Assembly: GCA_038496445.1 (NCBI GenBank)
Contig: JALMLS010000573.1
Span: forward strand, 284,917 to 348,916
Direction of reading: 5' to 3'
Length of the DNA stretch: 64,000 nucleotides
From: Trichosphaerium sp. ATCC 40318
Taxonomy: Eukaryota > Protista > Tubulinea
Made by a program: the position numbers and the translations under genes. Within the stretch, counting starts at the first letter, position 1, and each line of letters begins with the position of its first letter. This document shows positions 1 to 51,744 of this stretch, in pieces. A model generated the notes under the pieces. It was given only the letters and a program-made list of their open reading frames with translations. It made no database searches and had not been told where the DNA came from.

Positions 1-3000
1 CAACTTTGTCATTTGTATCGAAAAGATTCAATGTTCTGTAATCTATTGCTGTTATAACAAGTCCACTTGTTTCATAACACTCAAGTTAAAATATGACAAT
101 ATCAGATTAAACGCACGTGGCATTAGATCTATCCCAAGTCTGAGCATAGTTCAATCGCGGATTTAGATCCCAGATGGTATCACTTTGTAATCCTTTCAAG
201 TATGTTTAGTATTTGAAAATATGGCATGTTACTTGTACCTGCATCAGTGAGATACTCTACTTCTGACTCGGATTTCTCTGTATTGTTACTCCACATGTCA
301 TCAGGTAGATCATACAAGATACCTTGCATTAATTGTCCATCTTCATGCCAGAAGTCCTTGAAAACAGAATGGGTTAGTGTATTTGCGATTCTGGTTAATT
401 TGTTGTTGACTTACTGGAGACTGAACAAGTTTGCGGTCAAAAGTACAAATCAAATACCGAACGCCCTTTTCTATAGCCAGTTTAAAATAAGATCTTTTTG
501 GCTAATGTACGATTAGTGTTAATGGTATGGTATTGAAATAATTAAACAAATCATACCAACTTCTGTATCCATCCTTTAAGATCACGTCTCCAGTGTTCGT
601 TTATGTTGATAACAGAACATGATTTCCATAGATCACAGCAATGTTTTCCATAGGGACAATGCTGTAAAAATGATACAAACAAGCTACTTGAGTGCGTCGT
701 AAATATATAAGAAACCATTTTCATAAATATGAAGGCAAAAAAGTCTTGCCACAGCCTTGAACTGGGTACAATGCCTTTTGTTGCTTTCAAAATAGCAAAA
801 AACAAAGCAGATATTCTTTTATCTAAAGTTAGCTTGAGTATCAAGAAAACCCATGTATACACTAATCACCTGAATCAAGTGAAGTTGTGTTTCTGTCTTC
901 ATCAAGTTCAATATCATCAATATTTGCCTTTGCTTTGAATGCAGTTTCTACACTGTCGATATTACCATAGCTAGCTATAAGGAGTGTTAGATTTATGGTG
1001 GTTTTATTCGGTACCTGCTATAATTAAAAGCGTTCTCCCATATTTATCAACAGCATCAATGTTTGCGTTTGCATTCAGTAATGTAGAAACAACTGTGTTG
1101 TGACTTTTAGCCGCTAATGTACAATGAGTGAGATGCAACTCAAGATAGTTGATACTATAACGTACTTGCGTACAATAAAGCTGTGTATCCAAAAATACTA
1201 TCAACAATTTCAGTATCTGCATTGGCGTTGATCAAAGTGCAAACAACTTGATTATGCCCATTACAAGCTAAGTTTTATGAGGGGTATTTGTTTTAAGTAT
1301 GAAATGTCACCTGCTTCAATTAATGCAGTCTTCCCTTCATATCCAACACCATCAATATTAGCTCCTGATCTAAGAAAGAGTTTGACATATTCGTTGTGGC
1401 CCTCGCTAGCTAGCTGGTGTGAGGTATTGAAAAGATATAGATCACTTTTTACCAGCATGATGTAATGCAATGTCAATATTAGCTTTTGCCTTGATTAAGG
1501 TATTCACTACTTCATTGTGTCCGTTAGATACTAAGAAAGTATGAGTTAGAAAGTGTTGCACTTAATATTTTGCCGTAACCTGCATGGGTTAGAGGTGTGC
1601 ATCTCAGTTTGTCAGAAGCATCAATGTTTGCATTGGCTTGTATCAAGGTCAATACGACTTCATTGTGTCCCTTTCTTGCTATTGTATTGTAAGTTTTCAT
1701 GGTTGCTCTGTTGTGCTTTTATATCACCTGCAACAATTAATGCTGTATTCCCACAGCTATCAGCTTTTTCTATATTCGCATTAAGTTGAGTCAAGGTTGA
1801 TACAGCTTTATTATGTCCACTGTCCGCTGGTGTATTGTCACATGTAACTAAGTGTATATTTTGACATTACCTGCGTGAATTAAAGCTGTGCCTCCATCAT
1901 TATCAACAGCATCAATGTTTGCCTTGGCTGTTATTAAAGTTGAGATTACTTCATTGTGTCCGCCACAGGCTAATATTTTTATAAGTTAGTTATTGTGCTT
2001 GCTTTGTTTTGTTTTGTACCTGCAACAAGTAAAGGTGTGTTTCCAAAATTATCAACCGCCTCAATGTTTGTATTGGCTTTAATTAAGGTTGAAACAACGT
2101 CATTATGTCCACTAGATGCTAGGCTATGTAAGTTATAGGTTGTTATCTAAGATGTTGATATCACCTGCGAGATGTAAAGCAGTGTATCCATTGTTATCCA
2201 CACTGTTGATGCTTGCATTTGCTTGAAGTAGTATTTTGACAACTTCATTTTGTCCGTTACATGCTAGATATTGTGAGCTGTACTAGAAGTTTAGATATAT
2301 TACAATTTACCTGCACCATGCAATGCTGTAATTCCATCGTTATCACCAGCATCAATATTTACGTTAGCTTGAATAAAGGCCGAAACAACATCGTTGTGTC
2401 CTCGTGACGCTTTGGTATTGTGAGTTTTAGGATGAAGTTGTAAGTTAACACATATAGAGATGGTCACTAACGGCCATAGCCGGTTAGCCGTTTAAATTTT
2501 TGTCTATAACCGGCTAAGAAAAATAAGGGAAAACTCAAACATTTTTTGCATTTTTTTTTGCGTGATACTAGGCTTTGGACGTGTATCAAAACATAAAAGA
2601 AGTTCAAAGCCATTGAGAGCCTTTAGAACTTAAAAAAGCATGCGGATTCATGGTACAACACCAACAAATTCTCACATTTTTAAACGGTCTAGCCGATTAC
2701 AGATTTTGTTACTGGATCGAACCGCGACCCCCTCTAACCACATAGTACCTCCAATAAGTAAAGCTTTGTGCGCATTATCTGTTTCGGTATTTGTACTTGC
2801 TCTGAGTAAGGCTGACACAACTGTACTATGTCCCATATATGCTAAAATAGTACGATTATAGTCAAGATATTGCGTCCATAGTGTGATCTCATACCTGCCA
2901 AAAAAAGAGCTGTATATCCATGGTTATCAACTACCTCAGTGTTTGCATTTGCTTTTATCAAGGTCAATATCACTTCATTGTGTCCGGCGTGTGCTAGTGT

Positions 3001-3462
3001 TGTTATTGAGCCACATACTTTTCGTTGTTTTCGATAGGAAGTGAGGATACCTGCATAAATTAAAGCTGTATCACCCGTGTTATTAACAGCATCAATATTA
3101 GCACGCGATTCAATTAGCAATTTGACGATTTCATTATGTCCTTTGTGGGCTAACAGGTCACGTGATTAGAAGCTTTTGTTAAGCTTTGCGCTACCTGCAT
3201 TAATTAGAGGTGTATTCCCTTTACGTTCACCAACAGCTTCGATATTAGCGCTTTCTTTGATTAATAATTCTACAAGCTCCTTGTTTCCTTTCTCCGCTAA
3301 GTAATGTGAGTTGCCTCGTTTTTCTTTGTTATTATTACCAGCATCAAGCAACGCTTCTTTTTTGTCACTAGCGGTCAGTCCTATTACGTAGATTAACAAA
3401 CAGGTACAAACTTCGTTACCAGTACCCTCCACCTGTGTATTTTTGCTCTGTGGTTCTGCCAT
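1..3462 (-). CDS. Ankyrin-repeat / PARP-like ADP-ribosyltransferase family gene 1 (multi-exon; 3' part runs off the left edge)
   Basis: ATG at 3462 (MAEPQSKNT), then about 15 ankyrin-type exons, mostly 99 nt with GT-AG phase-1 introns (e.g. 3051-3149, 2895-2993, 2311-2409, 2165-2263, 2020-2118, 1871-1969, 1728-1826, 1580-1678, 1311-1409, 1015-1113). Consensus is AxxGHNEVVxxLIxAxANIDAVDxxGxTALxxA. A linker domain follows (SRLWQDFF, DFWHEDGQLMQGILYDLP). Bases 1-450 are nearly identical to the pre-PARP part of gene 2. Confidence 0.9.
2455..2736. mobile_element. Non-autonomous hAT-type MITE inserted in an intron of gene 1
   Basis: Imperfect terminal inverted repeats TAGAGATGGTC...GACCCCCTCTA, flanked by a near-identical 8-bp duplication (aacacata 2447-2454 / accacata 2737-2744). 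It expands an otherwise ~50-nt intron. Confidence 0.7.
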
Positions 3463-4065
3463 GACGTGTTGCCACTCCTGAAGTATCAGTACAGCGTTAT
3501 TAAGTTAGGATAAATTGACTTGCGACAACAACACTGTTTCTTTCGCTACAGCTCCGTTTTTAAGAGCAGTACTTAATGCGTTATTATGTTATGATAAACG
3601 CGAAACAGCGTATTGGGAGTCACTCACAGAGGTTAGAAAAATATTGGCTTAAATCGAACATTTACTCAGAACAATTTTTTTCATAAAGATTTCCTTTAGC
3701 GAATTTTCTGATTGAGCAGCGAGTGCCCTAAATTAAAGGTGCAAACTAAAATGCGTTTTTAATGAATTTCACTTTGTCACGTGAATAATTTTGTGCCCAG
3801 ATTGTTTGTCTTCTACCTGGAGCATTAAGTACTGCTCTTAAAAACGGAGCTGTAGCGAAAGAAACAGTGTTGTTGTCACAAGTCAATTTATCCTAACTTA
3901 ATAACGCTGTACTGATACTTCAGGAGTGGCAACACGTCATGGCAGAACCACAGAGCAAAAATACACAGGTGGAGGGTACTGGTAACGAAGTTTGTACCTG
4001 TTTGTTAATCTACGTAATAGGACTGACCGCTAGTGATAGAGAAGGAGCGTTGCTTGATGCTGGTA
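3336..4065. repeat. Inverted repeat: 244-bp arms (3336-3579 / 3822-4065) around a 242-bp spacer
   Basis: The arms are reverse complements with about 5 mismatches. Each carries upstream sequence, ATG, exon 1, intron 1 and exon 2 of one of the divergent ANK-PARP genes. Confidence 0.95.
3580..3821. promoter_or_regulatory. Shared bidirectional promoter spacer between genes 1 and 2, containing GTCACGTGA (3776-3784)
   Basis: This is the only unique DNA between the two divergent 5' arms, and it contains an E-box-like palindrome. Function is inferred from position. Confidence 0.5.
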
Positions 4066-7000
4066 CCAATACAAGATTAAATAGATTACCAGTAGCTCAT
4101 ATAACCAAAGCAACAAGTGGCAACAACGAGATCGTCAGCACATTAATAAAATCGAACGTAAATATTGATGCTGTTGATAAATACGGAAATACTGCTTTAA
4201 TCCTTGCAGGTAACATCATATGATAGCACGTGCGAATAACACATCCTAGCAAAGCACGGAAACAATAAAGTCTTATCGACTTTAATCACAGCGAAAGCTA
4301 ACATTGAGGCTGTTGATAAATACGGAAGAACACCTTTAATTGTTGCAGGTGATATCAGATAGTTCACTTGTAACTTGTAACTCTAACGTGTTATCGCAGC
4401 AAGCAATATAGTAGCCACAGAATACAACAATAATGCTGTGTCCACTTTAATCAAATCCAACGCGAATGTTGATGCTACTAGTATACATGGAAACACAGCT
4501 CTACATCTTGCAGGTAACAGTTAAACATCACATCCAAAAAAACTGTTATTTACACAATACATAGCGGATAGTGGAAGCGGTTTAATCGTCTCCATGCTAC
4601 TAAAAGCTGGTGCAAATGCTGTTGCCATTAACAAGAAAGGATACACTCCCTTACTTTACGCAGGTATAGTTCTAAGATTTAGTTCATTCGCTGTAACTTA
4701 CCTTAACTTAAGCACAAAATGGGAACATGTATGATGTTGAAATGCTAATCAAAGAAATAACCAATACTGAAGAGCGCTCAAAATCTACTTCACGTGATTA
4801 TGGTGCTAATTACTCCAACATACATGTGGAATGTATTACTCAAACTTCTTTAGATCAACTATTAACTTCTTTGTTTGTTAATAGTTTGAAAGCCACAGGC
4901 GGAGTTTTACCAACTTCAAGATTGTGGCAAGACTTTTTTGTCTGTGTATTTGTGAGAGTGATTTCCAACAAACAAGTGTTCATTCCGCTGTTTGAGACTT
5001 TCTTAAAACACTGCCCTACTTATGAAAGCTGTAATCTATGGAATTCTTGTTTGCTCACAATTGCTAACAATAAAAATGTTTCAGTGGCCACTGACGAATG
5101 GCTAAGGTACTTGGTACGATATAAGTTCATTCTTAAAATTTTACTACCATTCCGACTGACGAAATATACCTTAGCCAACGCGTTCTTATTTTAAATTGGT
5201 GATGGAAAAGGGTATTTGCCGTTTAATTTGTACTTTTGACCGCAAACTTGTTCAGTCTCCAGTAAGTCAACAACAAATTATCAGAAATCGCAAATACACT
5301 AACATTTTGTTTTCAAGGACTTCTGGCGTGAAGATGGACAATTAATGCAAGGTATCTTGTATGATCTACCTGATGACATGTGGAGTAACAATACAGAGAA
5401 ATCCGAGTCAGGCGTAGAGTGTTTCACTGATACAGGTACAAGTAACATGCCATATTTTCAAATACTAAACATACTTGAAAGGATTACAAAGTGATACCAT
5501 CTGGGATCTAAATCCACGATTGAACTATGCACAGACTTGGGATAGATCTAATGCCATGTGCGTTTAATCTGATATTGTCATATTTTAACTTGAGTGTTAT
5601 GAAACAAGTGGACTTGTTACAACAGCAACAGATTACAGAACATTGAATCTTTTCGATACAAATGACAAAGTTGCTGTCAGAGAACTACAGATCCTCAAAC
5701 AAAAAATGTCAAAACTACATGGTTACAACGATTTCAGTCTTGTTGAAGCCAAGCTTGTGTGTAATGACACCTTGAATCAAAACTTTGGAAACGCCAATAG
5801 AATACTGAAACACAGACATCAGTATGTTTTTTTTTTTTTAATTCAACTTTACCAAACGTATGTAATTTTGCTAACCTGAACTTAGAGGATTACCGAGACT
5901 GTTTAAAAAACAAGATTGGAGAGAAGATAATATCAACAAGGAATACAATGACGCCGTTTACAAAAAGTATGATAGCCTTGTTAAACATGACGCAAGTTAT
6001 AATGATGCCAACACTTCACAAGATGTAACATTCTTCTGTTTTTTTTTCTTTAGAGTATTGAATCACTAACAAAAGCTGTTTAGGTACCAGTGATATTGAT
6101 GGTTCATGGAACAACTCAAAAAGCAGCTTACAGTATTGTACAAGCTGGATTCGGAACTGTGAGTGCATTGGATGCTGGTTACTATGGCCAAGGCATCTAC
6201 TTTACAGTATGTTTAAAACCATTAAATCACCCCCTTTTCACTTTTTTACCCCACAGACAAGTATACAATACGCTTGTTCATACGATCTATCTGGCACCAC
6301 TGAAAAAACTCTGATTTTGAGTCTTGTCACTCCTGGCAACGTATATCCTGTACGCAAGTGATTTGAGTATGTTGTTCATTTAATAATGTTCTTCAAAGGT
6401 AAAACCAAACGACAAGTTAAGAGGACAACCAATTAAACCAGGCTACCAAAGTCACTACACTTTGGTTGATCGATTGGGTAGACCTCTCAAAGAACGTAAA
6501 CTTGCCAATGCAGTGTATGATGAGCTTGTTGTTGCCCAAGGTATTCCTTTATCCAAACACTTATACTATGTTTTATTCTGACGATATTAGATGTTCAAGC
6601 TGTTGCTCGTTACATCATCAAAGTTGTACAGAAACCCAAACAGCCCAAAACAAACCAAACAAAATCGTCTAAGAAGGAAGATAAACATGCCAAGCATACC
6701 AACAAGCCAAGCGGAAAAGATATTGATGATTCAGATGATGAGCTTTCTGACACTGAAGATGAGAAGTTTATTAGTAAACGGTACAATCATCACAAATTTC
6801 TTGTGTTCTGTTAACTTTATTGTACTAGAAAACTATGGGCATCTACTTCGCCACTTGACGAGGCACAGAAAAACAAAGTAGAACAAGAGCCAGGTAAGAA
6901 TATAAGTTCACCAAAGGGCCAACACGCAGACGCTGAACTCCATTTTGAACAAGAAGTACACAACGAGGTTGATCAACTACAGAGAACAAACGCCATCTTA

Positions 7001-7144
7001 AAAGAAAGCGCTGTTTCCTTAAACCAAGAGAATGCAAACCAACTGCAAAGCATCGCCAGCTTAGAAGAGAGTAATGCTATCCTAGAGGAAAGAAATGCCT
7101 TTCTACTTGCCAAACTTGCTAAGCTTGAGAGCGCACAGAAGTAG
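3939..7144 (+). CDS. Ankyrin-repeat / PARP-like ADP-ribosyltransferase / coiled-coil gene 2 (complete, multi-exon)
   Basis: Four 99-nt ankyrin exons (4111-4209, 4250-4348, 4415-4513, 4565-4663) plus a partial fifth, then the linker domain. ART motifs: LMVHGT, DAGYYGQGIYFT, YACSY, YDELVVAQ. The coiled-coil tail ends LAKLAKLESAQK, TAG at 7142-7144. Confidence 0.9.
5226..5673. repeat. Outer inverted-repeat arm: near-identical reverse complement of bases 1-450, introns included
   Basis: Base 1 pairs with 5673. Exons and introns (gtaagtcaacaacaaatta..., gtacaagtaacatgccatattttc...) match almost base for base. The arm probably continues beyond the window on the gene 1 side. Confidence 0.9.
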
Positions 7145-7370
7145 ACAATAACGTTTCATGCTTTATTTGTTCTATTCCTATCACACAATAACCATGTAAC
7201 AATCATTTACAATAAACATACTCACAACCATTATTAATGGCTCAATAGGACAACGGCTTAGGTTAATAGTATAAACGCCTTTAAGAGCATGTATAGCTTT
7301 ATTGTAACTGAATTAAAGCTTAGATCGATAGTGTACTCCAGCAAGAGCAATAGTCTTTATTTCATAATTT

Positions 7371-9568
7371 TCATAATTTCGGTTGCTGCCTCAGAATTTG
7401 TCTTATACCAAAGTCTAACATAATCTCTTCAGAACCACCGCCAATAACATCTAAATAATAAATTAGTATTTCAACAACTAACAGTAATATATTGCCGTAC
7501 ATGCTCTACACTCCCTCGACAAGCGTTCAGCCACTGCACCCATACCTGTTTTGGTGAATGCTTTCGCTCCAAAGATTTGTCCAGACTCCCTTACACAAAA
7601 CTCGAAGCACGCTGTCGACTGTGTCTTAAGGAGTGCTACCGCGCCTCCAAGCTTAGTACGGGATTCAAATTTATCCATGTGCTCCATTTGATAAGTAATA
7701 TGCTCAAGCCAATTCCAAGAAGATTCTATAAAACGAAGCATTCTCCCAAGTTTATTTCTAAATTTTTGTTTTTTGGTTAAGCATTACGAACCATCTTTTA
7801 TGTGTTTTTTTGTTTATGACATACCGTATTACTGGATGTTCTATGAGTTTCTTTCCGAACGTTTTACGTTTTTGTGCGTATTTTAGAGACTCTAGAAAAG
7901 TCATCAATCACCAAAACAAGTCTTTAACAGAAAGAAAGCCAAATACTTCTCCACTTTTGTACCTTCATAGAGTACCCTAGAAAAACGTAACTACGAGAAG
8001 TGTTAGTCTACACACCTTTATAATATGTAAAGTATAAACGTACAACTTGTATTGCTAGTAACCACCTCTCATTGTTAAAGTTCCACATGATATAAAAGAA
8101 CCCATTATTTTCTTCTCCTATTAGATTACATGCAGGGACTTTAACATCTTCGAATGTAATGAAAGCTGTTCCTGATACATAAACACCAGTACATTCCATT
8201 TGACGTGTAGTTATCCCAGGCATGCCTGGAAGCATCAAAAAGTTAACAACAGTCACGTGATTTGAAAAAACGGTTGTAAAATAACAAACAGTAAAGAAGT
8301 CAAATGAAATAAAATGATATAAAAAGTGCTACGTTGTTTGGCGACTAAACGCATGATTTAAGATATGTACCTCGCTCCAAAAGCAAGAAAGAGAGGCCAT
8401 GAAGGCCTTCACCACCAGTCCTCACTGCTACAGTAAAGTAATCTGCAAATACGCCGTTCTAAAGTTTATGAGAACTGAGCAGCAGTGCAAGTCTAAAACC
8501 GTACTGTTATCCATTTCTTTGAACCATTGACAATGTAATGCTTGCCATCTGGTGTTTTCTTGGCAGTTGTTTCCAATTGTGCAACATCGCTCCCGGCATT
8601 TGGCTCTAAATTCAGTTACAACCTACAGATTGTAAAGAACTTTTACCTGTTATGCATAAACACATTATTTTTTCACCGCTAATACAGTCACCAAGCACCT
8701 TGTCTTTCAGATACCTTTTTGGAAAAAAATAAGAATTGGCAATAAATATTTCTCAAGTTGAAGCAAATACTGACTCCAATAAGCAAAAAGGATAAACAAA
8801 AGCTAATAATTCAAAAAACGAAAGATAATTCGTCATACTTTTAAAAGTATGCCTGATGATAACACGTGTCAAAACGAAAACAAAAGGGTATTTTTTTTCG
8901 GAAGTGAAAAAAAAGCTAAAACAGAGCTCTGCTTACTGAGATCCGAAGTTACGTATAGGTGGTAGTCCTATTGCCAAACCACCAGATATTGCCCAACATA
9001 CACCTCCTGAACCAATACGTGATAGTTCATCTGTTAGTATGAGCTCATGAAACTTATCAAACTCCTCAGGTTTAACATCACCTTTTTCAACAGGTTATTC
9101 CTCAATACAATAACGTCCATGCGTACCAATTATATGGCGAGTATGCTCTGCAGGCCATGGATGACCGGCTACACCACCTAGAATACCAGCTTGAAAAGCT
9201 CGTTTGTAAATAGTTGGATCTATTCTTCCGGATTTTTCCCATTCTTCTACATAAGGTCTACGAAACGTGTTAGTTACGCAAGAAGAAGCTATTATCGATT
9301 TTAACGGCCAAATTGAAAGAAATGTACCAAAAAATTTGTACCTCATTTCTTTATCAATCCAAGCACGCGCTGCTATGCGCATACGCGTATGAGAAGCATT
9401 GTAGTACGGAGACTTCCATCCTTGGCTCCTGTGACATACAATTAAACATGCACGCCTTGTAAAATAAAATAACGCAGGTAAGCCGTAATTTTACGTCGGT
9501 TTGGGATATTGGAGGTAAAATAATAGTTACCAGGTCGGATCGCCAAAAGGAACAATTTTATCGCTCAT
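7371..9568 (-). CDS. Acyl-CoA dehydrogenase (multi-exon)
   Basis: Spliced motifs [84 protein letters not shown]. Confidence 0.93.
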
Positions 9569-32990: not shown

Positions 32991-33822
32991 CTACTTGTTT
33001 GTAGTTTCAAGTTGGGCTATTTTCTCAAGCAGAATGGCTTTTCTTAGACTATTACCGGTCTCAGTTAAGTTGTCAATGTGTTGCTTTGTCGAATTATCTT
33101 GTTTCAGGTTGGCATTGCTTTTTGTTATTTTGACAATGTCTTTCTTTAGGCCGTTGACACTTTCCGTCAAATTGTTGATGAGTTGCTGCTTATCTTGCTT
33201 TAAGTATATTGTCGTTGCCTTGTGTTGGTTTGCTGTAAATTTTCATGATTTTCCTCCATATTCTCATTGCTCTTCTTTAGTTTGTTCATCTCGTAGTTTG
33301 CTTTCTGTAATTCTATGTCGAGATTGCATAGTTGCTAGTTGATTGCTGGTCATCAGTTGAGTACACATGGGCAGCCCATAGTTTTCTGTGCAACAATATG
33401 AGGTTAAATAAAAGGATGTGATATCTTACCGGTTAGAAATACAATTATTGTCATCGTCAGAGATCATCTATCTTTAATTTTGTTTTTTTGTTTTTTTAGT
33501 TTGGGTATAATTTATAGTACCTCGAGCAACAACAAGCTCATCGTACACAGCATGAGATACTCTATTTTATTTGAGAGGTCTAACTAAGCGATCTTATAAT
33601 TATTGGCCATAGTATCCAGCATCCAAAGAGCTCACTGTTTCCATCTTTATCAACATTGGCATTGACTAAAATTGATACGATGTTATTGAATCCCATTAGT
33701 GCTAAATAGTAACGTGAATAGCATGTATTTTACCTTGTTGTGTGATATTACCTGTCCAAATCAAAGTTGTCTGTCCACATACATTCACAGTTTCAATGTT
33801 GGCATTGGCATGGATTAACATA
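32991..33822 (-). pseudogene. Deleted and frameshifted ANK-PARP family pseudogene
   Basis: Collinear remnants of gene 3: coiled-coil end, KLWAAHV, YDELVVA (~33525) and TVSSLDAGYYGQ (~33605-33640), abutting two broken ankyrin exons. Confidence 0.85.
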
Positions 33823-34391
33823 CCAAAGTAGGATTCTCAGAGAAAGTTGCTAACCTAGAGATGACGGTAGATAATTGGTTAAAAAATTTGTTTTTTGCAG
33901 ATGATCTTCTTCTTCTAGCCAGCTCTACAGACGATATAGAAGAAAAGAACTACTGGCTAGACAGATATAGCAAAGCGACGGGATTACAAATCAATAAGAA
34001 GAAATGTTTTCAAGCAAATATTTCTGGTCTAAATGGCTACAATAGTAAAGTTTTTGATACAGGTACAAGTATTAGGTATCTAGGCTTTAGTCTGAGTGAC
34101 GATGGACTGAATTTTGATTGGAACAGTACTAGAGAGAAAATAACAGTACAACTAGTAAAGTGGAAACCTCTGTGTAAAACAATTCGTCAAAAAATTAATA
34201 TTTTCAAATCGTATGCCCAATCCCAACTAATCTATTTCACCAGACCTCTCTCAATCCCTCCTAGTGCAACTGCTAAACTCATTAATATGTGTAATTGGTT
34301 CCTGTGGGATGTTTCTCGTGTCTTTGACAAGAAAAAGAAATATTCTTGTGTGTCATGGTCACAACTTTCTCATCCATTCTCTCGGATTTAA
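33823..34391 (+). mobile_element. Non-LTR retrotransposon reverse transcriptase fragment (L1/Tx1-like)
   Basis: FADDLLLL, ATGLQINKKK and IRYLG motifs. Same family as the fragment at 57.7-58.6 kb. Confidence 0.85.
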
Positions 34392-38029: not shown

Positions 38030-38575
38030 GGTTGTCACTTTCTAATACTAAAAAAAATAGTAGTGAGCTAGCTCAGGTTGTATTTAATTTATGATACTAC
38101 CATTAAGCAAAACTGTGTTTCCTTGTGCATCAATAATATCAACATTGGCTCTAGCTTCTATTAACATTGATACAATTGCCTTGCCCTTCTAGTACTAAAA
38201 TAATAGTGTAAGCACGTTGTTGTAGCTCATTTTGTGATGGTACCAGCCCACATCAAAGCTGTGTTTCCATCTGCATCAAAAGCATCAACATTTGCTTTGG
38301 CATTGAATGCTGATACAACTTGTCAAATCTGAAAAATGCTAGGGTGTTGTCATGATCCAATGTATGATCTAGTGATTTTACTTGTATTATCCAAAGCTGT
38401 GTTTCCACTTTGATCAACAGTATCAATATCGGTGTTGGCCTTAATTAACATTGATAAACTTCATTGTGTACTTTTGGTGCTAAATAGTAGAGTGATATGT
38501 AGATGTTTATCTCATCTATCATGTTACCTGCACAAATTAAAGCTGTATTTCCATATTTATCAATAGCCTCAATTG
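38030..38575 (-). pseudogene. Degenerate ankyrin exon/intron units related to gene 3
   Basis: Four to five broken units. The intron ctaaatagtagagtgatatgtagatg...catgttacctg closely resembles the gene 3 array intron. Frame-disrupting deletions are present. Confidence 0.75.
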
Positions 38576-38825
38576 CCGCTATCTGACATTGGTTGGCTAG
38601 CCAAAACTGAAATTAGTAAGTGAATAACGAGATAGTGTACAAGGAATAGACAGGTTTTTGTTAATTCACGCCATCTACTTATTTGTATTATCTGGTAAAG
38701 TACTTTTTTTCTGTTTTAATCCAGTCGTTCATAATTCTTTGAGCCAATTACAAGTGGCGAGGAACTAACATGTGCTAGTAAGTCGGAAATTGTATAGTGT
38801 AGATTTTTTGATTTCAAAAAACCCA

Positions 38826-39270
38826 TTATGAAAACCAGAGTGGAGCAATTATTTTTATCGTCGGATTCTATGCACTGATACATGTTGCATTAGTGTGCAA
38901 AGAATCAGAGTCAAAATCGGTCTGGTAAGCCAGAAATTTTGACTTTTTTGTCGATTTTTTGCTTCAAAAACGAAGACTTTTTTACCTTCAAAAAAAATTC
39001 CAGAAAAAAATAAGAAAGGTAACATTTATGGCAACCACGGACAAGTTCAGCTCTGACTTTTTACACAGTACACCAACATGTCAATACGCGTATTTTCAAT
39101 TTTTTTGAAGGTGAAAAAGTCTTCGTTTTTGAAGCAAAAAATCGACAAAAAAGTCAAAATTTCTGGCTTACCAGACCGATTTTGACTCTGATTCTTTGCA
39201 CACTAATGCAACATGTATCAGTGCATAGAATCCGACGATAAAAATAATTGCTCCACTCTGGTTTTCATAA
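38826..39270. repeat. Near-perfect palindrome (~173-bp arms, ~98-bp spacer); foldback-like element
   Basis: 38826-38999 is the reverse complement of 39098-39270. Diverged relatives of the arm occur at ~60975-61285. Confidence 0.9.
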
Positions 39271-41928: not shown

Positions 41929-44900
41929 CTACTTGTTTGTTCTTTCAAGTTGGGCTAGTTTCGCAAGTAGAGTGGCGTTTCTCTCTTGTACGTCAGTTAG
42001 GCTTTTCCTTAAGGTGATGTTATCTTGCTTCAGGATGGCATTGGTTTTGGATAAGTTGACGTTGTCTTTCTTTAGGTTGTTGACACTTTCTTTAATGATG
42101 GCATTACTTTCTGTTAATTTGACGTTGTCTTCCTTCAGGTCATTGACACTTTCTATCAACTTGACATTGTCTTGCTGTAGGTTGTTGACACTTTCTGTTA
42201 GGTTGATGATGTGTTGTTGCTTGGTTGAGTTGTCTTGTTGTAGGTTATTGACACTTTCTGTTAGGCTGATATTGTCTCGCTTCAGGTCGGCATTGTTTTC
42301 TGCTATTTTGGCAATGTCTTGCTTTAGATTATTGACGGTTTCTGTCAATTTGATGATGCGTCGTTGCTTGATCGAGTTGTCTTGCTCTAACTTCGCATTA
42401 TACTGTTGTTGGTTTGTATTGTTCTGTTGTAATTTCTCAAGAAGTTCCTTCATATTCGCATTACTCTTCTTTAGTTTGTTCATCTCGTAGTTTGCTTTCT
42501 GTAATTCTATGTCGAGATATACATCATTGCTAGTTGATTGCTGGTCATCAGTTGAATCCACATGGGCAGCCCATAGTTTTCTAGTACAACAGCGTAAGTT
42601 TAAATTCAAGCAAAACATGTGACTTCTTACCGGTTACTAGTAAAATTATCATCATCAGAGTCAGAGATATCATCATCTGAACCTTCATTTTCTTCTTTGT
42701 TTTGTTTCTTTGTCTTTTTACCACCTTTCTTGGGTTTTTTTGTTTTCATTCGTTTTTTGATTTGATTATCTTTCACTGCAACTTTGATGATGTAACGAGC
42801 AACAGCTTGAGAATCTGATTGCAAAATCAAGTTAATACAATTTTTTGGTAGTAGTTGCTCCTGTACCTTGTGCAACAACAAGCTCATCGTATACCGCGTT
42901 GGCAAGTTTATTTTCTTTGAGAACTCTACCTAAGCTATCTACCAATGCAAAATGACTTTGGTAGCCTGGTTTTATTGGCTGTCCTCTTAACTTGTCTTTT
43001 GGGTGTACCTTTTTGCAAATTAGATACGACAATAAAATTGATTACATACAGGATATACATTGCCAGGAGTGACAAGACTCAAAATAAGTGTTTTCTCTTT
43101 CTTTCCTCCCTTATCATAAGAACACGCATATTTTATACTCCGCTGTTGTGAAAGAAATGAATATAGTGTTACATTATTATCGCGTACTGTGAAGTATATC
43201 CCTTGGCCATAGTAACCAGCATCTAAAGCACTCACAGTTCCAAAACCAGCTTTTACAATACTGTAAGCTGCTTCTTCACTTGTACCATGAGCCATCAATA
43301 TCACTGGTGACTAAACGTAGGTTAGTACAAATAGCTTTTTTTTAACAAACATTACCTCTTCTTTTGAAGCGTCCTCGTTATTGGTACTTGAATCTTTTTG
43401 CATTGGTGTGGAATTGTGTTGTTTGTAAACACTCTCTTTGTACTTTTTATGTATGCCATTTTTCCAATTTTGTTTTTTAAACAACTTGGCAAGTCCTCTA
43501 CAAGTACATACTTAGACACATTAAAACAGGGTATAATAATAGAGTACTGATGTCTATGTTGTAGTATGTTGTTGAATTGTCCAAAGTTGTCATTCAAGAT
43601 ATCATTGTAAACAAGAGTCGCTTCAACAATATCGTATTGGTCATAGCCGTGCATTTTGGACATCTGTTGTTTGAGGACGTTGAATTCTCTTACAGCCACT
43701 TTGTCAGTTGTATCAAGCAGATTCAGTGTCCTGTAGTCAGTCGCCTTTAAATCAATGCCCCTTTTTAAAATAAACTGAAAAAACCCCAAATGGTAATAAG
43801 TTTGAACGCACGTGCTGTTAGATCTGTCCCAATTATTTGCAAAATGCAACCTCAGATTTAACTCCCGCGTGTTTTCAGCCTTAATTCCTTTGTGGTACTT
43901 TAGTGTTTGTAGCAAAACAGTGACCTTGATACCTGTAGTAATATCTTCAAAGTATTCAATTTGATCGGTGTTGCTCCAGGCATCATTGGGCATATCAAAC
44001 AAGATGCCTTGCATTAATTCTCCATCTTGTTTCCAGAAGTTCTAGTAAAAAGCAAACAGTATAAAGTTTACATGTGGTTTGTGGATTCGTACTGCAGACA
44101 AAGCAACTTTGGGATTGCACACAGAACAAATTAAATAACAAATGCCCTTTTCCATTGCCAGTTTAAAATAAGAACGGGTTGGCTGAAGGTTGTAACAATT
44201 AAAACAAGTAAAGCATTTCAAAGGTAGCATACCAAGTACCGAAGCCATTTTCTAGGATGTTTAAGATCTTGTTTCCACTGCTCGAAGTATGCTTTGTTGT
44301 ATTGAGTCATTTGCATTTCCAATCTGTTCCTGTTTGTGGAGGACATAAAGGATGAACAAGATTTCCACAATGCATGGCATTGTTTGCCACTTGGACAGTA
44401 TTTTAAAAAAGTTACAAACGCTTCAACAGCTGCTGGAGCATTTGATATCACTTGTTTAAATAACGATAAAAGAAAATCTTGCCACTTTTTCTTATCTGGT
44501 GATATAACTAAAACCCAACTGTTAACTATTGTTTGTTTCAAACAAATAGAGTTACAAGTGTGAAATTGCAACAGTACCTAAATCAACATTGTTTCTATTT
44601 TCATCACCAGCGTTCTTATTTAAATGTGCTTTAAGTAATATTGGTATAATTTCATTATTTCCTCTTTGTGCTAAATAGTAACATAAGCTAAACTTGTAGT
44701 ATTTCTTTTGATGTAACCTGAAAAATGTAAAGCTGTATTTCCATCTTTATCAACAGCATGAATATTGGCATTGACATTGAGTAATGTTGATACAACTTCA
44801 TTGTGTCCTTCTTGTGCTAAATAGTAGAGTAAGGTATGTACATGTTATATCTCATTATATCATGTTACCTGCATAAATTAAAGCTGTTTTTCCATCTTTA

Positions 44901-46609
44901 TCAACAGCATCAATATTGGCATTGGCGTTGAGTAATGTTGATACAACTTCATTGTGTCCTTTTAATGCTAAATAGTAGAGTGAGGTATGTACATGTTATA
45001 TCTCATCATATCACATTACCTGCACAAATTAAAGCTGTCTTTCCATCTTTATCAACAGCATGAATATTGGCATTGGCGTTGAGTAATGTTGATACAACTT
45101 CATTGTGTCCTTCTGATGCTAAATAGTAGAGTGAGGTATGTACATGTTATATCTCATCATATCATGTTACCTGCATAAATTAAAGCTGTCTTTCCATCTT
45201 CATCAACAGCATGAATATTGGCATTGGCGTTGAGTAATGTTGATACAACTTCATTGTGTCCTTTTTGTGCTAAATAGTAGAGTGAGGCATGTACATGTTA
45301 TATCTCATCATATCATGTTACCTGCATAAATTAAAGCTGTTTTTCCATCTTTATTAACAGCATGAATATTGGCATTGGCGTTGAGTAATGTTGATACAAC
45401 TTCATTATGTCCACACGATGCTAAATAGTAGAGTGAGGTATGTACATGTTATATCTCATCATATCATGTTACCTGCATAAATTAAAGCTGTTTTTCCATC
45501 TTTATCAACAGCATGAATATTGGCATTGGCGTTGAGTAATGTTGATACAACTTCATTATATCCACACAATGCTAAATAGTAGAGTAAGGTATGTACATGT
45601 TATATCTCATCATATCATGTTACCTGCATAAATTAAAGCTGTTTTTCCATCTTTATTAACAGCATGAATATTGGCATTGGCGTTGAGTAATGTTGATACA
45701 ACTTCATTATATCCATACAATGCTAAATAGTAGAGTAAGGTATGTACATGTTATATCTCATTATATCATGTTACCTGCATAAATTAAAGCTGTTTTTCCA
45801 TCTTCATCAACAGCATGAATATTGGCATTGGCGTTGAGTAATGTTGATACAACTTCATTGTGTCCTTCTTGTGCTAAATAGTAGAGTAAGGTATGTACAT
45901 GTTATATCTCATCATATCATGTTACCTGCACAAATTAAAGCTGTTTTTCCATATTCATTAACAGCATGAATATTGGCATTGGCGTTGAGTAATGTTGATA
46001 CAACTTCATTGTACCCGCTTTGTGCTAAATAGTAGAGTAAGGTATGTACATGTTATATCTCATCATATCATGTTACCTGCATAAATTAAAGCTGTATTTC
46101 CATATTTATCAACAGCATGAATATTGGCATTGGCGTTGAGTAATGTTGATACAACTTCATTGTACCCGCTTTGTGCTAAATAGTAGAGTAAGGTATGTAC
46201 ATGTTATATCTCATCATATCATGTTACCTGCACAAATTAAAGCTGTTTTTCCATATTTGTCAACAGCATGAATATTGGCATTGGCGTTGAGTAATGTTGA
46301 TACAACTTCATTGTGTGCTAAATAGTAATTTGAGATATGCACCATGTTGTATCTCATATAAAGCATTACCTGATCTAATAAAGGCTGTGTTTATATCTTC
46401 GTCAACAGCACAATTGTTTACTATCACTTTAAGTAACATTGAAACAATTTGAGTGTAGCCATTTGTTGCTGTACTTGGTCAACTATTTGCTTATCAATGC
46501 ATTACAAACCTGCAAAAGAAAACACAATTTCAATTATGGGGAGATGGATGTTGTTGGTTGGTTCTTCCTGTTCTAAATGTTGGTTTTCGTCACTTTGTGA
46601 TTCTGTCAT
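41929..46609 (-). CDS. Ankyrin-repeat / PARP-like ADP-ribosyltransferase / coiled-coil gene 3 (complete)
   Basis: ATG at 46609 is preceded by the same GAGTG(A/G)CAACACGTC as genes 1 and 2. About 13 ankyrin exons and the linker domain follow. ART motifs: LMAHGT, DAGYYGQGIYFT, YACSY, YDELVVAQ. A long coiled coil ends at the stop at 41929. Confidence 0.92.
42040..42380 (-). repeat. Coding tandem repeat (21/42-nt heptad units; SVNNLQQDNVKLTE) in the gene 3 coiled coil
   Basis: Repeated ttgacactttc...ttgtcttg blocks, translating to reiterated 14-21 aa units. Confidence 0.8.
44718..46327 (-). repeat. Tandem array of 11 ankyrin exon+intron units, period 151 bp (99-nt exon + 52-nt intron)
   Basis: Exon lower ends at 44718, 44869, 45020, 45171, 45322, 45473, 45624, 45775, 45926, 46077 and 46228 (the last has an in-frame 9-nt deletion). 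Confidence 0.97.
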
Positions 46610-47875
46610 GACGTGTTGTCACTCTTGAGGTTATCACAAATCAGTATTAAGTCGGTGTTACTTGACACATGAGATTTTTCAGTGAAACGTTATTGTAAAT
46701 TTGTGTTGCGGTTCTGGTTTTGTGTTTTTTTTAAATTAACTGAATCGTTTCAAGAAGGCGATTGCCTGTACAATAGTTGAAATAATTGTTGAAATAAAAA
46801 TTGCAAAGGAAAAGTTAAGTTTACGGAACTGACTCAGATTATCAATAGTTTTTGCTATTGATAATTTTTTTTTCATATAACGCTGAAGGCATTTTTCCAG
46901 TCTTTTTGCCGTCTCTATTCTGAGAGCCGGCTTGGTATTGTATATAATTTCGGCTATTTTGCCGGCAGTAAATAAAGAACGTAGGTAACAAAAACTGTCG
47001 TTTATTGCCTCATTGTATTGCTGGAAGTCACTATCTGCACTGTGATCACTGCCAACGTACTGATCTATGTCCTCAAGTTCTGTTTTGTCTATCATTGGGA
47101 TTGAGAGTACCACCTTGAGCAGCATGGGAAATCAGCGCTCTGTGATTCATAATTTGGGTAGTAAGTTGATGTTGGTGGGTCTGCTCTATCCCAGTGCTCT
47201 GTTGGTTTCTTTAGTCTCAAGGGCGACCCATTATATATATTTGCAATGAATGAATCCCTTCTGTTGCCTTCATTGTATTTTGCTGGGTGCCGCCCTGTTC
47301 TTTTCTTCGGGCCTGCTGTAGTTTTTTTTCTTCTTCAATCTCTGTATCTCTTGTCTTTACCGTACCAGTAAGTTTATTGTACACTTTTCAAGGTGTTATT
47401 GCAGCACCAAGTGCATACATGCGTTGTTGCAGTTCTAGTTCAGATGGCGGCAGTCTTTTTGGGTTTGCAAGTGGCCTCTTATAAAAGTTAAGTCGGCCTG
47501 ATGCGCAGCAAACATAGCAATCCTCTGCCAATTAGCTACACAATTCTTAGACAAAAAAAAAACTACTTACGCGTTTTTACAGTGTTACGCTGAGTCTTCT
47601 CAATCTATGCATATGGATAAAAGAGATTGTACTGTGATTACCTGAACTCAACATCAATAAGTATGTCAGTGATACGCCCTGCCATTATGTCAAGTTCTGT
47701 ATCTGAAAACCCTATAGTCCTTGTTAGTGCGTTGTGATGTGACTTGTCAGTAGGAGAGAGAAGAAAAACTTAGACAAGTTTTGGCCTTGAAAGGTCGAGC
47801 CTCCAAGGCTCCCAATCCGCGTTGTACGAAGTACAAGAAACCCCAAACCGAAGGACGGCGGCTTGGGTAGCCTCG

Positions 47876-48904
47876 TTAGGGCTCCATCTCCAAAGCTGCG
47901 CGTGTTTTACTGGCCATGGAGCGTTTGATGCGTCTGCGCTGATCGGCATCTATGACGATGTAAAGTAAAACTGCGTTGGAGCGCCAATCTCCGAGGTCAC
48001 GGACGATTGGCAAGGAGGCCCCCATCTTGAAGGCCCACGTGGCACCGCCACGGCGAAAGGAGTGGCCAGCGTATAGAGCAGGGTCATAACCTAGCAGGTT
48101 CATTATCTGTTTCGTGCGAGCAACGAAACGTGAGTATGTGAGCGTCCAGCGAGAGCCATTTATAATGGCGGCGAAGATAGGTCCAGAGCGAGGAGCCACT
48201 TTGTCGAGGAGCGTTGAGAGGTATGGAACTGGAGAGATCTCCAGTCCAGAGTTGACAATTTCGATGGATAAGATTCGTGATCGGTCCCGAATCGTCTTGG
48301 TCTTGGTGAAATTGAGAGTGAATCCGTCAGCGTGTCGAGTGATGATACTACGGCAAAGGTGGTATCCAGGAGCAAAGCTGCTGACGGATTTGGGTACTAG
48401 TTGACCGGAACGAAGGAACGTGTCAAAGGCTGTAAGGGCAGCTGTGTAGTAGATGAAGTCTTTCGTGTTGTTGAGGTCAAGAACTTCTTTCATGCGTACC
48501 AGTATCCGTGGTGATATTGGGTGTTTCCGTCGAATGCCATGAGGGTTGCATTTGGAAATACCGCTCATGAGGAGTTGGAAACGAAACATTAGGTCGGTAC
48601 GTAGAGGAGGGAAGCTGTACCATTGCGCATAGAAGCGCACAGAAGTGATGTATTTGTGAATGGTCGAGGGTGAGAGTTTGAATCCTCTGAACATGATCGT
48701 GACAACGTCGCACAGGTTAGATTCAGTGATAGGGAGAGGTGAAGTGTTGAGAAGGATTGTTGCTTTCAGGTAAAATCTCCAGCCAGATCTATAAGATGCC
48801 CAAGTGCCTTTAGCTAAAGCCGCTTGGAGGAGGATATTCTTCTTCTTCTCTAACCTGTTCCAGTCCATGGTTGAGGGTCTAGTTTGAAGTTTTGCGAGGC
48901 GCAA
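47876..48904 (-). CDS. Tyrosine recombinase of the DIRS-like element
   Basis: FLRSG (catalytic R), KTKT, GHSFRRGGAT (HxxR), GDWRS and the terminal Tyr in LLY. Confidence 0.93.
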   Translation of the reverse strand: MRLAKLQTRPSTMDWNRLEKKKNILLQAALAKGTWASYRSGWRFYLKATILLNTSPLPITESNLCDVVTIMFRGFKLSPSTIHKYITSVRFYAQWYSFPPLRTDLMFRFQLLMSGISKCNPHGIRRKHPISPRILVRMKEVLDLNNTKDFIYYTAALTAFDTFLRSGQLVPKSVSSFAPGYHLCRSIITRHADGFTLNFTKTKTIRDRSRILSIEIVNSGLEISPVPYLSTLLDKVAPRSGPIFAAIINGSRWTLTYSRFVARTKQIMNLLGYDPALYAGHSFRRGGATWAFKMGASLPIVRDLGDWRSNAVLLYIVIDADQRRRIKRSMASKTRAALEMEP

Positions 48905-50430
48905 AAGATGTGACAGGCGTGGAGGTCGTTACGAGAAAGCAAATCTGTGATGGTGTTGTCTTCAGACGAGATGTGTTGAGTCGTCAGACGGAAGTGAAAA
49001 CGCGCTTGAAGGTTGTGAATGGAGCGGATGAGAGGCATAGCTCCTTTGACCTTTGTTGTGAGGCGATTGATGGCAGCCTCGGTGTTGGTGTTGTCAGTGT
49101 ACACTTGGCAGATGGTGTGACCTGAGAAAAGATGTGAGAACACAACGATACCCTTATAAAGCGCGTATATTTCTCGCCAAGCGATTGAGAGACGACGTTG
49201 TTCGTCATTGAAGGCTCCCATGAGCCAATGTCCGTTGTAATATACCCCATAGCCCCAATCTGAGGTGTCAGCAGTGAAGAATTTATGATTTTCAGGTAAA
49301 GGATCCACAAGTATCGCTTTACTGTTGAAATGAGACATGAAGTTAATCCACCAGGCGATGTCGTCTTGGAAGGCGCTGTTGAGAGATACCCAGTGGTAAG
49401 GACGCGAGGCGGCATTCATGCAAGTGAGGATGCATTTAAGGTATGTACGTCCGCCATATATGACTTGAGAAGCCCAGTTGAGTTTGCCCGCAAGAGATTG
49501 GAGATCTTTCTTGCGAGCTTTCTTGCGATTTCTGAAAAAGAGCAAGAGGTCCAATGTTTCTTGGAGTTTAGAAGCCGAAAGGCGAGCTTCACGCTTGACG
49601 GAGTCAAGTTCAACACCCAAGAATGTGATGGTGGTGGAAGGTACCGAGATTTTGGAAGGTTTGACAGTGAAACCAAGAGAACGAAGAAGGGTGACGAGGG
49701 CGTCACGTACTTTGACACAAGTGTCGAAGTCTTTAGCAGCGATGAAGAAATTGTCAACATAAACGGTGACGTATATCCAACAATCTTTAGCGAATGATTC
49801 GCATACTGCTTGTGTGAGAATGCAGAAAATGTATGCTGCAATGTTGAGTCCAAAGGGCATGCGAGTGTCGAGGTAGTATCTACCATTCCAGAAGAATACG
49901 AGGATTCTCCAGGAGTCACGAGCCATAGGTACAGCTCGATAAGCTTCACTGATGTCGATCTTAGCCATGAAGCAAGCGAGGCCTAAGATGAACATGAAGC
50001 GAATGGCTTCAGCGATACCTGCCATTTTGAAATGTGGAGGCACATTCATGTCGTTGACAGATCGGCCTCGAGGTGCGCTGAGATCAACCACGCGGCGTGC
50101 TTTGCCGTTGGATTTAACTACGACACCTAGGGCATTGGAGCGGAAGGGTTTGGAAGAGCAAGGAGCTATTCTTCCGAGAGAGAGTTCGTGAGAAACGTCA
50201 TCACTGAGTAATTTCTCGTGTTCGAAGCAAGAGGAATAATTGTTAACAAATGTAGGCTCAGAGGGAGCATTTTGGTTAACCACGCTAACGCCATAAGTAA
50301 GCCAGGCGACAATAACGGAACGCAGAGGGTGATCAGAAAGCATTTTATTCCAGAGGTGAACACGAATAGTAAGGGGTGAAAGGACTACCCCTTTTGGCAA
50401 CATATCAGTCGCGAGAATGACGTCTCCCAC
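48850..50430 (-). CDS. Reverse transcriptase / RNase H of the DIRS-like element (catalytic motif mutated to YVDN)
   Basis: RRVVDLS, KIDISEAYR, MPFGL, YVDNF, FLGVELDS, LAGKLNWAS, IAWREIYA, YTDN, DLLSR. Confidence 0.93.
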   Translation of the reverse strand: MGDVILATDMLPKGVVLSPLTIRVHLWNKMLSDHPLRSVIVAWLTYGVSVVNQNAPSEPTFVNNYSSCFEHEKLLSDDVSHELSLGRIAPCSSKPFRSNALGVVVKSNGKARRVVDLSAPRGRSVNDMNVPPHFKMAGIAEAIRFMFILGLACFMAKIDISEAYRAVPMARDSWRILVFFWNGRYYLDTRMPFGLNIAAYIFCILTQAVCESFAKDCWIYVTVYVDNFFIAAKDFDTCVKVRDALVTLLRSLGFTVKPSKISVPSTTITFLGVELDSVKREARLSASKLQETLDLLLFFRNRKKARKKDLQSLAGKLNWASQVIYGGRTYLKCILTCMNAASRPYHWVSLNSAFQDDIAWWINFMSHFNSKAILVDPLPENHKFFTADTSDWGYGVYYNGHWLMGAFNDEQRRLSIAWREIYALYKGIVVFSHLFSGHTICQVYTDNTNTEAAINRLTTKVKGAMPLIRSIHNLQARFHFRLTTQHISSEDNTITDLLSRNDLHACHIFCASQNFKLDPQPWTGTG

Positions 50431-50436
50431 GAGATT

Positions 50437-51744
50437 TCATGGATCGATGGTCTTCGTGGCGTCTTGAGCAGTCTTTTTGGGCGTCTTGGGCGTTTTGGAT
50501 CTTTTCGATGGCGCGTTCGAGCTGTCGGATGCTGTTTCCTTTGTTCTCCTCGAGCACTTGGAGTCGTTTCCTGATAGATCGGAGCGCATCTGCAAGTCCA
50601 GCTGTCGAATACTCCTCGGACCGGTCCACCTTAGATCTTTGGAAATAAATGAGAAAATGTGCTCCAAATAATTGACATAGTCAATTAAAGCACCAAAAGT
50701 AAGAGAATTCTCTTTCACCATGGAGATGAATTTGAGAATAGCGCGCATGTTAAGCATGGCAAACTCGACTGGGCTGTAACTCGTATCGCTGAGGAGCTCT
50801 GTGCGAGACGCTCCGGAAAGCAAAAGGGAGTTACAGCTGCGTAGAGTAGAAAGAAAAATCACGGGTGCACGTGCAGAAGGTACTAACCGTTTCTTGCGAG
50901 AATCGTCAGGGTGATCCTCAGGTGAACGAGAACGCTTCGAGCGTTTTGAAGGAGCAGCAGGGTCCAGGTACTCACGTTCCAAATTCTCCTCTAAAACATC
51001 AATTTTGTCAGCAGGGACAAAATAATCACCATCGGAGTCAGACTCCTCATCAAGCATACCAGCAGCGATCGGTGGAGAGGAGCGGCGACCAGAAGACTTA
51101 GAGCCATTAGTCTGCTTAGTGGAGTCAGCAGAGGAGCCAGTGCGTCTTGCTTCTTTTGCAGTTCTCGAAGGAGCTGCGGAGGAAGGAGAGGACGAAGCTG
51201 GTGACTGAAACGACTTCATGGATTGCGCCAATACGGTCATCTGTTCGAGGATCTTGCCGAGTACCAAAGCTTGAGAAGGAGCTGGAGCCAATGTGGTTGG
51301 GGATTGGTTTGGAACTATGAGAGAGGGGTTAGAGCTGTTCGAAGTATGTGAAAGCAAGAAATCGGAAATTTCTTGTGAAATAGGGGCCAGGCGGCCTTTG
51401 TCGGTGAAGAAAATGTTTGGGCATCGCAAATGGTCGCGGCAAACACGAACGAAAAAGTTTAGGAAATTTTTCCGAATTGACAAATCTGTTTTAATCCAAG
51501 AAGAAGGAAAATCTTTGCTGACGCCGCTTTGGAAGCAAGACGAGAGCGCGTCAGATTCAGAGCTACGGCCTTTTTCGCCAGAAGTAACCAAAAGGTTTTG
51601 AAGGGTTTCAAAAGAGGAGTCGTAGTCTGTAATGCCTGTGACATCGGAAGTTGAAGGAACATTTGAAGTAGAAGTCATCTCAGAGGTTGACGATAGTTTA
51701 TTTTTGAGGGAAAACAGGAAGATATATTGCGATGTGGAACGCAA
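50437..51744 (-). CDS. Gag-like ORF1 of the DIRS-like element
   Basis: Long Ser/Pro-rich ORF immediately upstream of the RT, with the same composition. Assigned by position. Confidence 0.7.
   Translation of the reverse strand: MRSTSQYIFLFSLKNKLSSTSEMTSTSNVPSTSDVTGITDYDSSFETLQNLLVTSGEKGRSSESDALSSCFQSGVSKDFPSSWIKTDLSIRKNFLNFFVRVCRDHLRCPNIFFTDKGRLAPISQEISDFLLSHTSNSSNPSLIVPNQSPTTLAPAPSQALVLGKILEQMTVLAQSMKSFQSPASSSPSSAAPSRTAKEARRTGSSADSTKQTNGSKSSGRRSSPPIAAGMLDEESDSDGDYFVPADKIDVLEENLEREYLDPAAPSKRSKRSRSPEDHPDDSRKKRLVPSARAPVIFLSTLRSCNSLLLSGASRTELLSDTSYSPVEFAMLNMRAILKFISMVKENSLTFGALIDYVNYLEHIFSFISKDLRWTGPRSIRQLDLQMRSDLSGNDSKCSRRTKETASDSSNAPSKRSKTPKTPKKTAQDATKTIDP

Follow-up and report, generated by a model that had tools for sequence, protein, structure and literature searches.

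A head-to-head pair of ankyrin-PARP genes with nested inverted arms in Trichosphaerium sp., a probable mosaic of gene conversion or recombination between paralogs

Our analysis concerned a DNA stretch of 64,000 nucleotides from the protist Trichosphaerium sp. ATCC 40318 (Tubulinea; NCBI GenBank assembly GCA_038496445.1, contig JALMLS010000573.1, positions 284,917 to 348,916 of the forward strand), which as a whole is referred to as the window and in whose coordinates all positions are given. Its first 7.2 kb are filled by a head-to-head gene pair with divergent transcription. The two genes, here called gene 1 and gene 2, are predicted from sequence and from a structure model to encode PARP-type ADP-ribosyltransferases, and parts of them form an inner and an outer pair of inverted arms. 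The pair is made up of the following parts.

Gene 1, minus strand: ATG at 3462, 22 exons within the window, leaves the window at its left edge with the 3′ end open
1..450, minus strand: left outer arm, with the end of gene 1 exon 415-501, the exons 239-356, 117-192 and 1-65, and introns
451..3329, minus strand: central block of gene 1, with 15 ankyrin-type exons and a Cys-rich linker split by the intron 823-869
3330..3579, minus strand: left inner arm, with a core promoter of about 106 bp, transcript start at about 3473, ATG at 3462, exons 1-2 and the start of intron 2
5′ parts of gene 1, minus strand, from cDNA joints: exon 1 from 3462 to 3426, intron 1 at 3381-3425, exon 2 at 3339-3380
3580..3821, no strand: unique spacer of 242 bp with an RNA depth of 0
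3822..4071, plus strand: right inner arm, with promoter, ATG at 3939, exon 1 (3939-3975), intron 1 (3976-4020) and exon 2 (4021-4062)
4072..5225, plus strand: central block of gene 2, with 4 ankyrin exons and the linker in a single exon of 401 nt (4713-5113)
5226..5673, plus strand: right outer arm, with the end of exon 8, exons 9-10, the start of exon 11 and three introns
5674..7144, plus strand: rest of gene 2, with the PARP-type domain, a charged low-complexity stretch, the coiled coil and the TAG stop
Gene 2, plus strand: ATG at 3939, TAG stop at 7142-7144, 17 exons, 795 amino acids

Gene models, transcripts and protein architecture

Both genes contain numerous short GT-AG introns of about 40-60 bp each. 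The model of gene 2 was built from reading frames, splice sites and the homologous protein P0002, and that of gene 1 by the same rules plus splice joints in public cDNA contigs. Four public runs contain the locus, all of them cDNA-like and with the SMART template-switch oligo at contig ends, and the transcript evidence consists of assembled contigs (Logan) of the runs X1 and X2. Splicing of gene 1 in the public cDNA contigs agrees with the model. Specifically, trimming of the exon 2746-2841 to 2749-2841, which provides a GT donor, leaves 1062 nt between two anchored exons of gene 1, and this is the exact length between the same exons in a 2697-nt contig of run X1. Both genes are transcribed according to the cDNA contigs, with gene-specific transcripts of each present in one sample, and contigs specific for gene 2 cover 4564-4661 and 4976-5113. 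Some transcripts of gene 1 are spliced in other ways. At the intron 2994-3054 a GC donor located 4 nt upstream of the canonical GT is used in run X2, which results in a 95-nt exon and a broken frame; this joint is absent from X1. In the gene 1 transcript of X1 about 340 bp are skipped at 2410-2748, an unusually long intron for this gene, and a contig of X2 that is continuous across 2629-2841 and would meet a stop codon there represents a retained intron or an unspliced molecule.

The two proteins have an identical domain order. A short N-terminus (MAEPQSKNTQVEG...) is followed by ankyrin repeats (one phase-1 exon for each repeat), which score above the cut-off of Pfam Ank_4, then by a Cys-rich linker that is specific to this family and by a segment with no named domain. 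The C-terminal half comprises a PARP-type catalytic domain (H, Y, E), a charged tract and a coiled coil, and the catalytic residues in the gene 2 model are the H in HGT, the Y in GIYF and the E in YDELVV. When compared to the PARP family (PF00644), the homologues P0002 and P0004 reached 30.9 and 36.5 bits, both above the curated cut-off of 26.7 bits, and one exon of gene 2 alone gave a weak match of 17.3 bits. The AlphaFold model of P0002, which has a mean pLDDT of 56 and is poor except for the PARP domain and the coiled coil, resembles the catalytic domains of PARP1 and tankyrase, including tankyrase 1, with a TM score by target of at most 0.71; a sequence comparison of P0002 with solved structures gave no match. 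The ankyrin array together with the linker is presumably the target-recognising part, and the ankyrin and PARP parts would act as sensor and effector, respectively. Like tankyrase (ankyrin repeats, SAM and PARP domains), the proteins carry their ankyrin repeats N-terminal to a PARP domain with H, Y and E, but a Cys-rich linker takes the place of SAM, the C-terminal coiled coil is long, and each ankyrin repeat has an exon of its own, with repeat numbers that vary between paralogs. Since no SAM domain was found in Pfam scans of the exons, P0002 and P0004, the proteins are not tankyrases.

A HMMER scan of protein collections with the linker exon revealed only one true homologue, P0002, which originates from a metatranscriptome. 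A protein search with P0002 yielded seven distant proteins, a protein search with the arm exon 11 yielded no match, and two metagenome locus scans with alignments of P0002 and P0004 yielded no confirmed relative. Rfam gave no match across the window.

Two nested pairs of inverted arms and the blocks between them

By repeat search and self-BLAST the inner arms (3330-3579 and 3822-4071) are 250 nt long, 97.2% identical and 242 nt apart. Column-by-column alignment identified a core at 3822-4036 with a single mismatch in 215 nt (99.5%), at 3878. Beyond the core the differences cluster at 4037-4045 and 4066-4072; four of them fall inside the 9 nt of the former cluster and change DREG to DKKE. Past 4072 the identity between the two genes is 50-70%, which reflects general ankyrin-repeat likeness only. 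The folded inner palindrome reached z = -63 against shuffles, far beyond chance. Residual dyad symmetry within the spacer was considered and rejected, as the self reverse-complement score of the spacer was no better than that of shuffles.

The inner arm spans 117 bp upstream of the ATG, with one mismatch, and includes one intron; exon 1 provides 37 nt of coding sequence, intron 1 has 45 nt and exon 2 has 42 nt. A template-switch-oligo junction in a cDNA contig places the 5′ end of the gene 1 mRNA at about 3473, 11 nt upstream of the ATG. The transcript of gene 2 is expected by symmetry to start at about 3928, and a TATA-like TTAATAA is located about 25-30 nt upstream of this mirrored start. 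As the transcript of gene 1 begins within the arm, either inner arm comprises a core promoter together with exon 1, intron 1 and exon 2. The sites of difference between the arms are fixed, and the exon 2 variant of gene 1 is matched by a cDNA contig with 0 mismatches. Intron 1 of both genes (3381-3425 and 3976-4020) is in frame and stop-free and, if retained, would add a mostly hydrophobic stretch of 15 residues (TGNEVCTCLLIYVIG) behind residue 12.

The outer arms (1-450 and 5226-5673) are about 97% identical and differ by 13 substitutions and 3 indel events. In the repeat search, 1-371 and 5303-5673 were 97% complementary, and 373-509 and 5167-5303 were 85% complementary. The left outer arm is truncated at the edge of the window, which makes 450 nt a lower bound for its length, and the arm probably extends further into 5674..7144 of gene 2, where exon 11 continues towards the PARP domain. 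In the 4837-5673 alignment a maximum chi-square scan gave the best breakpoint at 5226, inside exon 8, with 37.5% differing columns to the left versus 3.8% to the right, and 0 of 300 permutations reached the observed value. Synonymous (pS) and replacement (pN) divergence are 0.57 and 0.22 in the 17 codons before 5226 and 0.042 and 0.036 in the 98 codons after it, a more than tenfold fall in synonymous divergence within one exon. Two of the three arm introns, 5436-5481 (46 nt) and 5558-5608 (51 nt), are 100% identical between the outer arms, and the third shows two substitutions and three small indels. Within the outer arm pN/pS is 0.87, with about 9 replacement versus 2 silent changes, as is typical of young, nearly neutral divergence and contrary to strong purifying selection. 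Of the 13 substitutions, five are packed in 21 nt (5412-5432; p = 0.013 by simulation), and this cluster could be a short patch that escaped conversion or an import from another paralog.

The central blocks of the two genes differ in the number of ankyrin-type exons (15 in gene 1 versus 4 in gene 2) and in the intron 823-869 of the gene 1 linker, which is without counterpart in gene 2. The linker domains of genes 1 and 2 share 42% protein identity with each other, 48-50% with gene 3, a third family member in the same window, and 39-46% with P0002. Judged by their sequences, the central blocks appear anciently diverged, as far apart as distant members of the family. Gene 3 (41932-46620, minus strand) has a different N-terminus, a much longer coiled coil and 12-13 near-identical ankyrin exon-plus-intron units with a period of 151 bp, and its 3′ half is only about 68% identical to gene 2 in DNA.

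A first-pass annotation of this DNA had described inner arms at 3336-3579 and 3822-4065 with about 98% identity, near-identical outer arms at 1-450 and 5226-5673 including their introns, and an about threefold difference in repeat number. These descriptions held, with the limits and identity of the inner arms as given above and with a chi-square breakpoint at the very position, 5226, at which the right outer arm had been started.

One transcript combines features of both genes. The 2697-nt contig of run X1 follows the gene-1-specific exons as far as nucleotide 51 of exon 8, a part with 15 gene-specific differences. Its exon 9 fits the copy of gene 2 with one mismatch (the gene copies differ at six sites), its exon 10 has the gene-2 base at 158, though it is placed on the copy of gene 1, and its exon 11 has one mismatch to gene 2 over 210 nt; compared to 5609-6000 there are 2 mismatches. 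The alignment of this contig includes 117-501 and 5318-6000 of the window, and its arm exons are mostly the variants of gene 2. The contig could stem from a strain with gene-2 variants in the arm of gene 1, via conversion or as an inversion isomer, or it may have arisen when k-mer assembly switched between copies across the 46 identical mRNA nucleotides at the exon 8/9 junction.

Possible origins of the mosaic

With a probability of roughly 0.6, we consider the pair to be a mosaic that arose by non-allelic gene conversion or recombination between paralogs. The ends of an old inverted pair would have been made alike by arm-to-arm conversion, once or repeatedly, in two segments, one consisting of the promoter with exons 1-2 and the other reaching from mid-exon 8 onward to the 3′ end. 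The ankyrin-plus-linker block between them would have escaped homogenisation and kept its old divergence. As an outcome, both genes would possess the same core promoter and N-terminus and nearly the same catalytic half, combined with different ankyrin arrays and linkers. We infer conversion as the process, and likewise its direction and its recurrence rate. Inverted orientation, high identity at non-coding and synonymous sites and abrupt tract ends are all found at the pair. The sharp breakpoint within an exon, the identical introns, the drop in synonymous divergence and the old centre exclude a single duplication followed by uniform divergence, in agreement with the first-pass annotation, which had argued that a single duplication would give uniform divergence. 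The same annotation had proposed ongoing conversion or recombination; conversion or recombination is favoured by the breakpoint, the introns and the pS values, and that it is ongoing is hinted at by one cDNA contig. The 5′ core carries 1 difference in 215 nt and the 3′ arm 13 in 445 (Fisher p = 0.044), a contrast that is gone when only near-neutral sites are compared. This weak test suggests that the 5′ core may be younger than the 3′ arm, and that there may have been more than one event.

Several points weigh against conversion or recombination as the origin. One recent event is indistinguishable from recurrent conversion, the contrast between the 5′ and 3′ arms being weak. The pair comes from one genome, whereas the classical proof would be paralogs that are closer within a species than orthologs are between species, and searches of public collections gave only distant homologues. 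Furthermore, the left outer arm runs past the window edge, and the junction 3474-3927 is covered by no independent read.

In a rather unlikely alternative, the whole gene was recently duplicated in inverted orientation, and one copy then received a new ankyrin-plus-linker block, by ectopic conversion or recombination, from a third and distantly related gene of the family; the arms would in this case be a remnant of the duplication rather than the product of homogenisation. Such a swap of the sensor cassette would likewise create a mosaic of two states, with sharp inner breakpoints at two places (about 4037-4072 and 5226), and it fits central blocks that are diverged like unrelated family members and differ in intron content. 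Loose cDNA contig ends at 342 and 5522 suggest more paralogs with a similar 3′ region, and both arms may be equally old at near-neutral sites. However, no donor was found, as gene 3 has merely about 68% DNA identity and protein and locus searches gave no close relative of either central block, and over all sites the 5′ arm looks younger than the 3′ arm. A donor elsewhere in the genome is quite possible. We favour homogenised ends over a replaced centre because the 5′ core looks younger and no donor is visible. Long-read assemblies are known to produce false palindromes, and the junction without independent read support might point to a fold-back chimeric read or to two haplotypes joined head to head. 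We regard such an artefact as very doubtful: fold-backs give uniformly identical arms that meet at a point, whereas here the centre is about 40% diverged, exon number and intron content differ, and the 242-bp spacer is unique and asymmetric. Moreover, gene-1-specific and gene-2-specific transcripts were found in the same sample, and a protein identity as low as 42% in one domain would be extraordinary for alleles. Purifying selection alone, by which promoter, N-terminus and catalytic half would be conserved beside a fast-evolving sensor, is hardly credible. Functional parts do lie in the arms, among them the promoter, the N-terminal cap and the stretch that leads up to the PARP domain, but with arm introns that are 100% identical and a pS that falls from 0.57 to 0.042 within one exon, protein constraint cannot explain the identity of the arms; selection as its cause is contradicted by the intron and synonymous-site data, and the pN/pS of 0.87 likewise speaks against it.

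Crossovers between inverted repeats invert the intervening DNA, and the nested repeats might serve recurrent or programmed inversion, with a flip of the spacer switching regulation and a flip of the central block re-pairing the arrays. The geometry permits this, the inner palindrome would fold strongly if single-stranded, and the isomer produced by an outer-arm crossover would yield a transcript like the X1 contig, with gene 1 exons joined to a gene-2-like exon 9 and position 158. However, we consider such a role decidedly unlikely. The X1 contig is patchy and not cleanly recombinant, and Logan contigs can jump between paralogs. No recombinase open reading frame (ORF) was found at the locus in 1-9000, and the window has a single tyrosine recombinase, which is part of a DIRS-like retroelement 44 kb off. 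Since the start of gene 1 lies in the arm and that of gene 2 is expected there, a flip of the spacer, which carries no promoter, would not move a promoter. An inner-arm crossover flipping a promoter spacer, as envisaged in the first-pass annotation, is therefore in line with the geometry but not with the position of the promoter, as the start of gene 1 at about 3473 and the TATA-like box are inside the arms. The segment between the outer arms does carry alternative sensor blocks, but the 3′ halves on either side share about 97% identity in their visible parts, and a swap would alter little. From the sequence, a function of the layout in inversion appears unlikely; it is a geometric possibility only. 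Occasional inversion by arm crossover is possible as a by-product, which would not be the function of the layout. It is also improbable that the repeats are in actual use, with outer-arm crossovers that re-pair sensor arrays with catalytic halves, conversion within the family that shuffles cassettes, and coexisting isomers. If true, this would be a recombination-based diversification of a protist ankyrin-PARP receptor family, and the mosaic contig of X1 would provide the first trace of it.

Mobile elements are abundant in the window. The DIRS-like retroelement (47876-51744, minus strand) encodes a gag-like ORF (435 amino acids), a reverse transcriptase/RNase H ORF (526 amino acids), in which the reverse transcriptase matches RVT_1 (Atlas score 0.98), and a tyrosine-recombinase-like ORF (342 amino acids) at 47876-48904. 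An isolated piece at 32994-33600 (minus strand), either a pseudogene or a truncated copy with similarity to the family's last PARP exon and C-terminal coiled coil, adjoins a LINE-like reverse-transcriptase fragment at 33861-34391. A second short palindrome (38826-38996 and 39100-39270) consists of AT-rich, non-coding DNA, with arms of 171 nt at 99% identity and a spacer of 103 bp, and has the appearance of a fold-back or MITE-type element; it is adjoined by degenerate ankyrin exons at 38087-38612 (minus strand). By eye, ORFs like pieces of DDE-transposases (pogo/Tc1-type) are found among 55503-56006 (minus strand), 61749-63089 (plus strand) and 57685-58586 (minus strand), and this group also holds a second LINE-like reverse-transcriptase fragment, which has a near-identical peptide in common with the one at 33861-34391.

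Comparison with known systems

The pair belongs to a known type of structure, and its distinctive feature is the two nested arm pairs around a variable ankyrin-plus-linker block. Crossover inversion is also possible in the human Y palindromes P1-P8, in which the arms surround a unique spacer and are kept alike by intrachromosomal conversion. Sex-chromosome palindromes share with our locus the highly identical inverted duplicates around a unique spacer, but their arms measure kilobases to megabases and are uniformly identical, whereas here the arms measure hundreds of bp, belong to one gene pair and have a diverged block between them. Site-specific inversion switches such as Hin/Gin/Fim, the shufflons and 2-micron FLP likewise have inverted repeats flanking a segment that could in principle flip. 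Unlike in these switches, there is no dedicated recombinase at our locus, the arms are long gene segments instead of short sites, and the inner segment is without promoter.

From Caenorhabditis, divergent and convergent paralog pairs that persist as inverted repeats have been described, among them head-to-head paralogs in which near-identical arms with promoter and 5′ coding sequence surround a short unique spacer. The divergent hsp-70 pair F44E5.4/F44E5.5 has arms of 160 bp and a spacer of 126 bp (Zhao et al. 2007, PMC1803023), compared to 250 and 242 bp here. In one C. briggsae pair the first 297 nt are identical at an overall identity of 59.6%, and gene conversion was proposed as the cause for the inverted hsp-70 and hsp-16 pairs of Caenorhabditis (PMC1803023). 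Our pair differs from these in the second, outer arm pair, which lies in the 3′ halves and frames a repeat array of very different length; gene family and lineage are also different, and the pair is known here from one genome. In the vsp genes of Giardia, identical copies occur only in head-to-head or tail-to-tail pairs (Adam et al. 2010, PMC2996952). These genes resemble ours as a protist multigene family of variable proteins with inverted pairs, but vsp pairs are identical over the whole ORF and 2-4 kb apart, whereas only the ends are alike here, and the vsp products are surface antigens, in contrast to the intracellular-type ankyrin-PARP enzymes of Trichosphaerium.

The locus illustrates a known process and reveals no new mechanism. 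It provides a clean, small example of a putative sensor-enzyme family that keeps a common promoter and catalytic half together with very different repeat arrays, with breakpoints resolved to single bases and located within an exon. If strains differ in their arm variants, as hinted at by one cDNA contig, conversion or inversion would become directly measurable in a little-studied protist.

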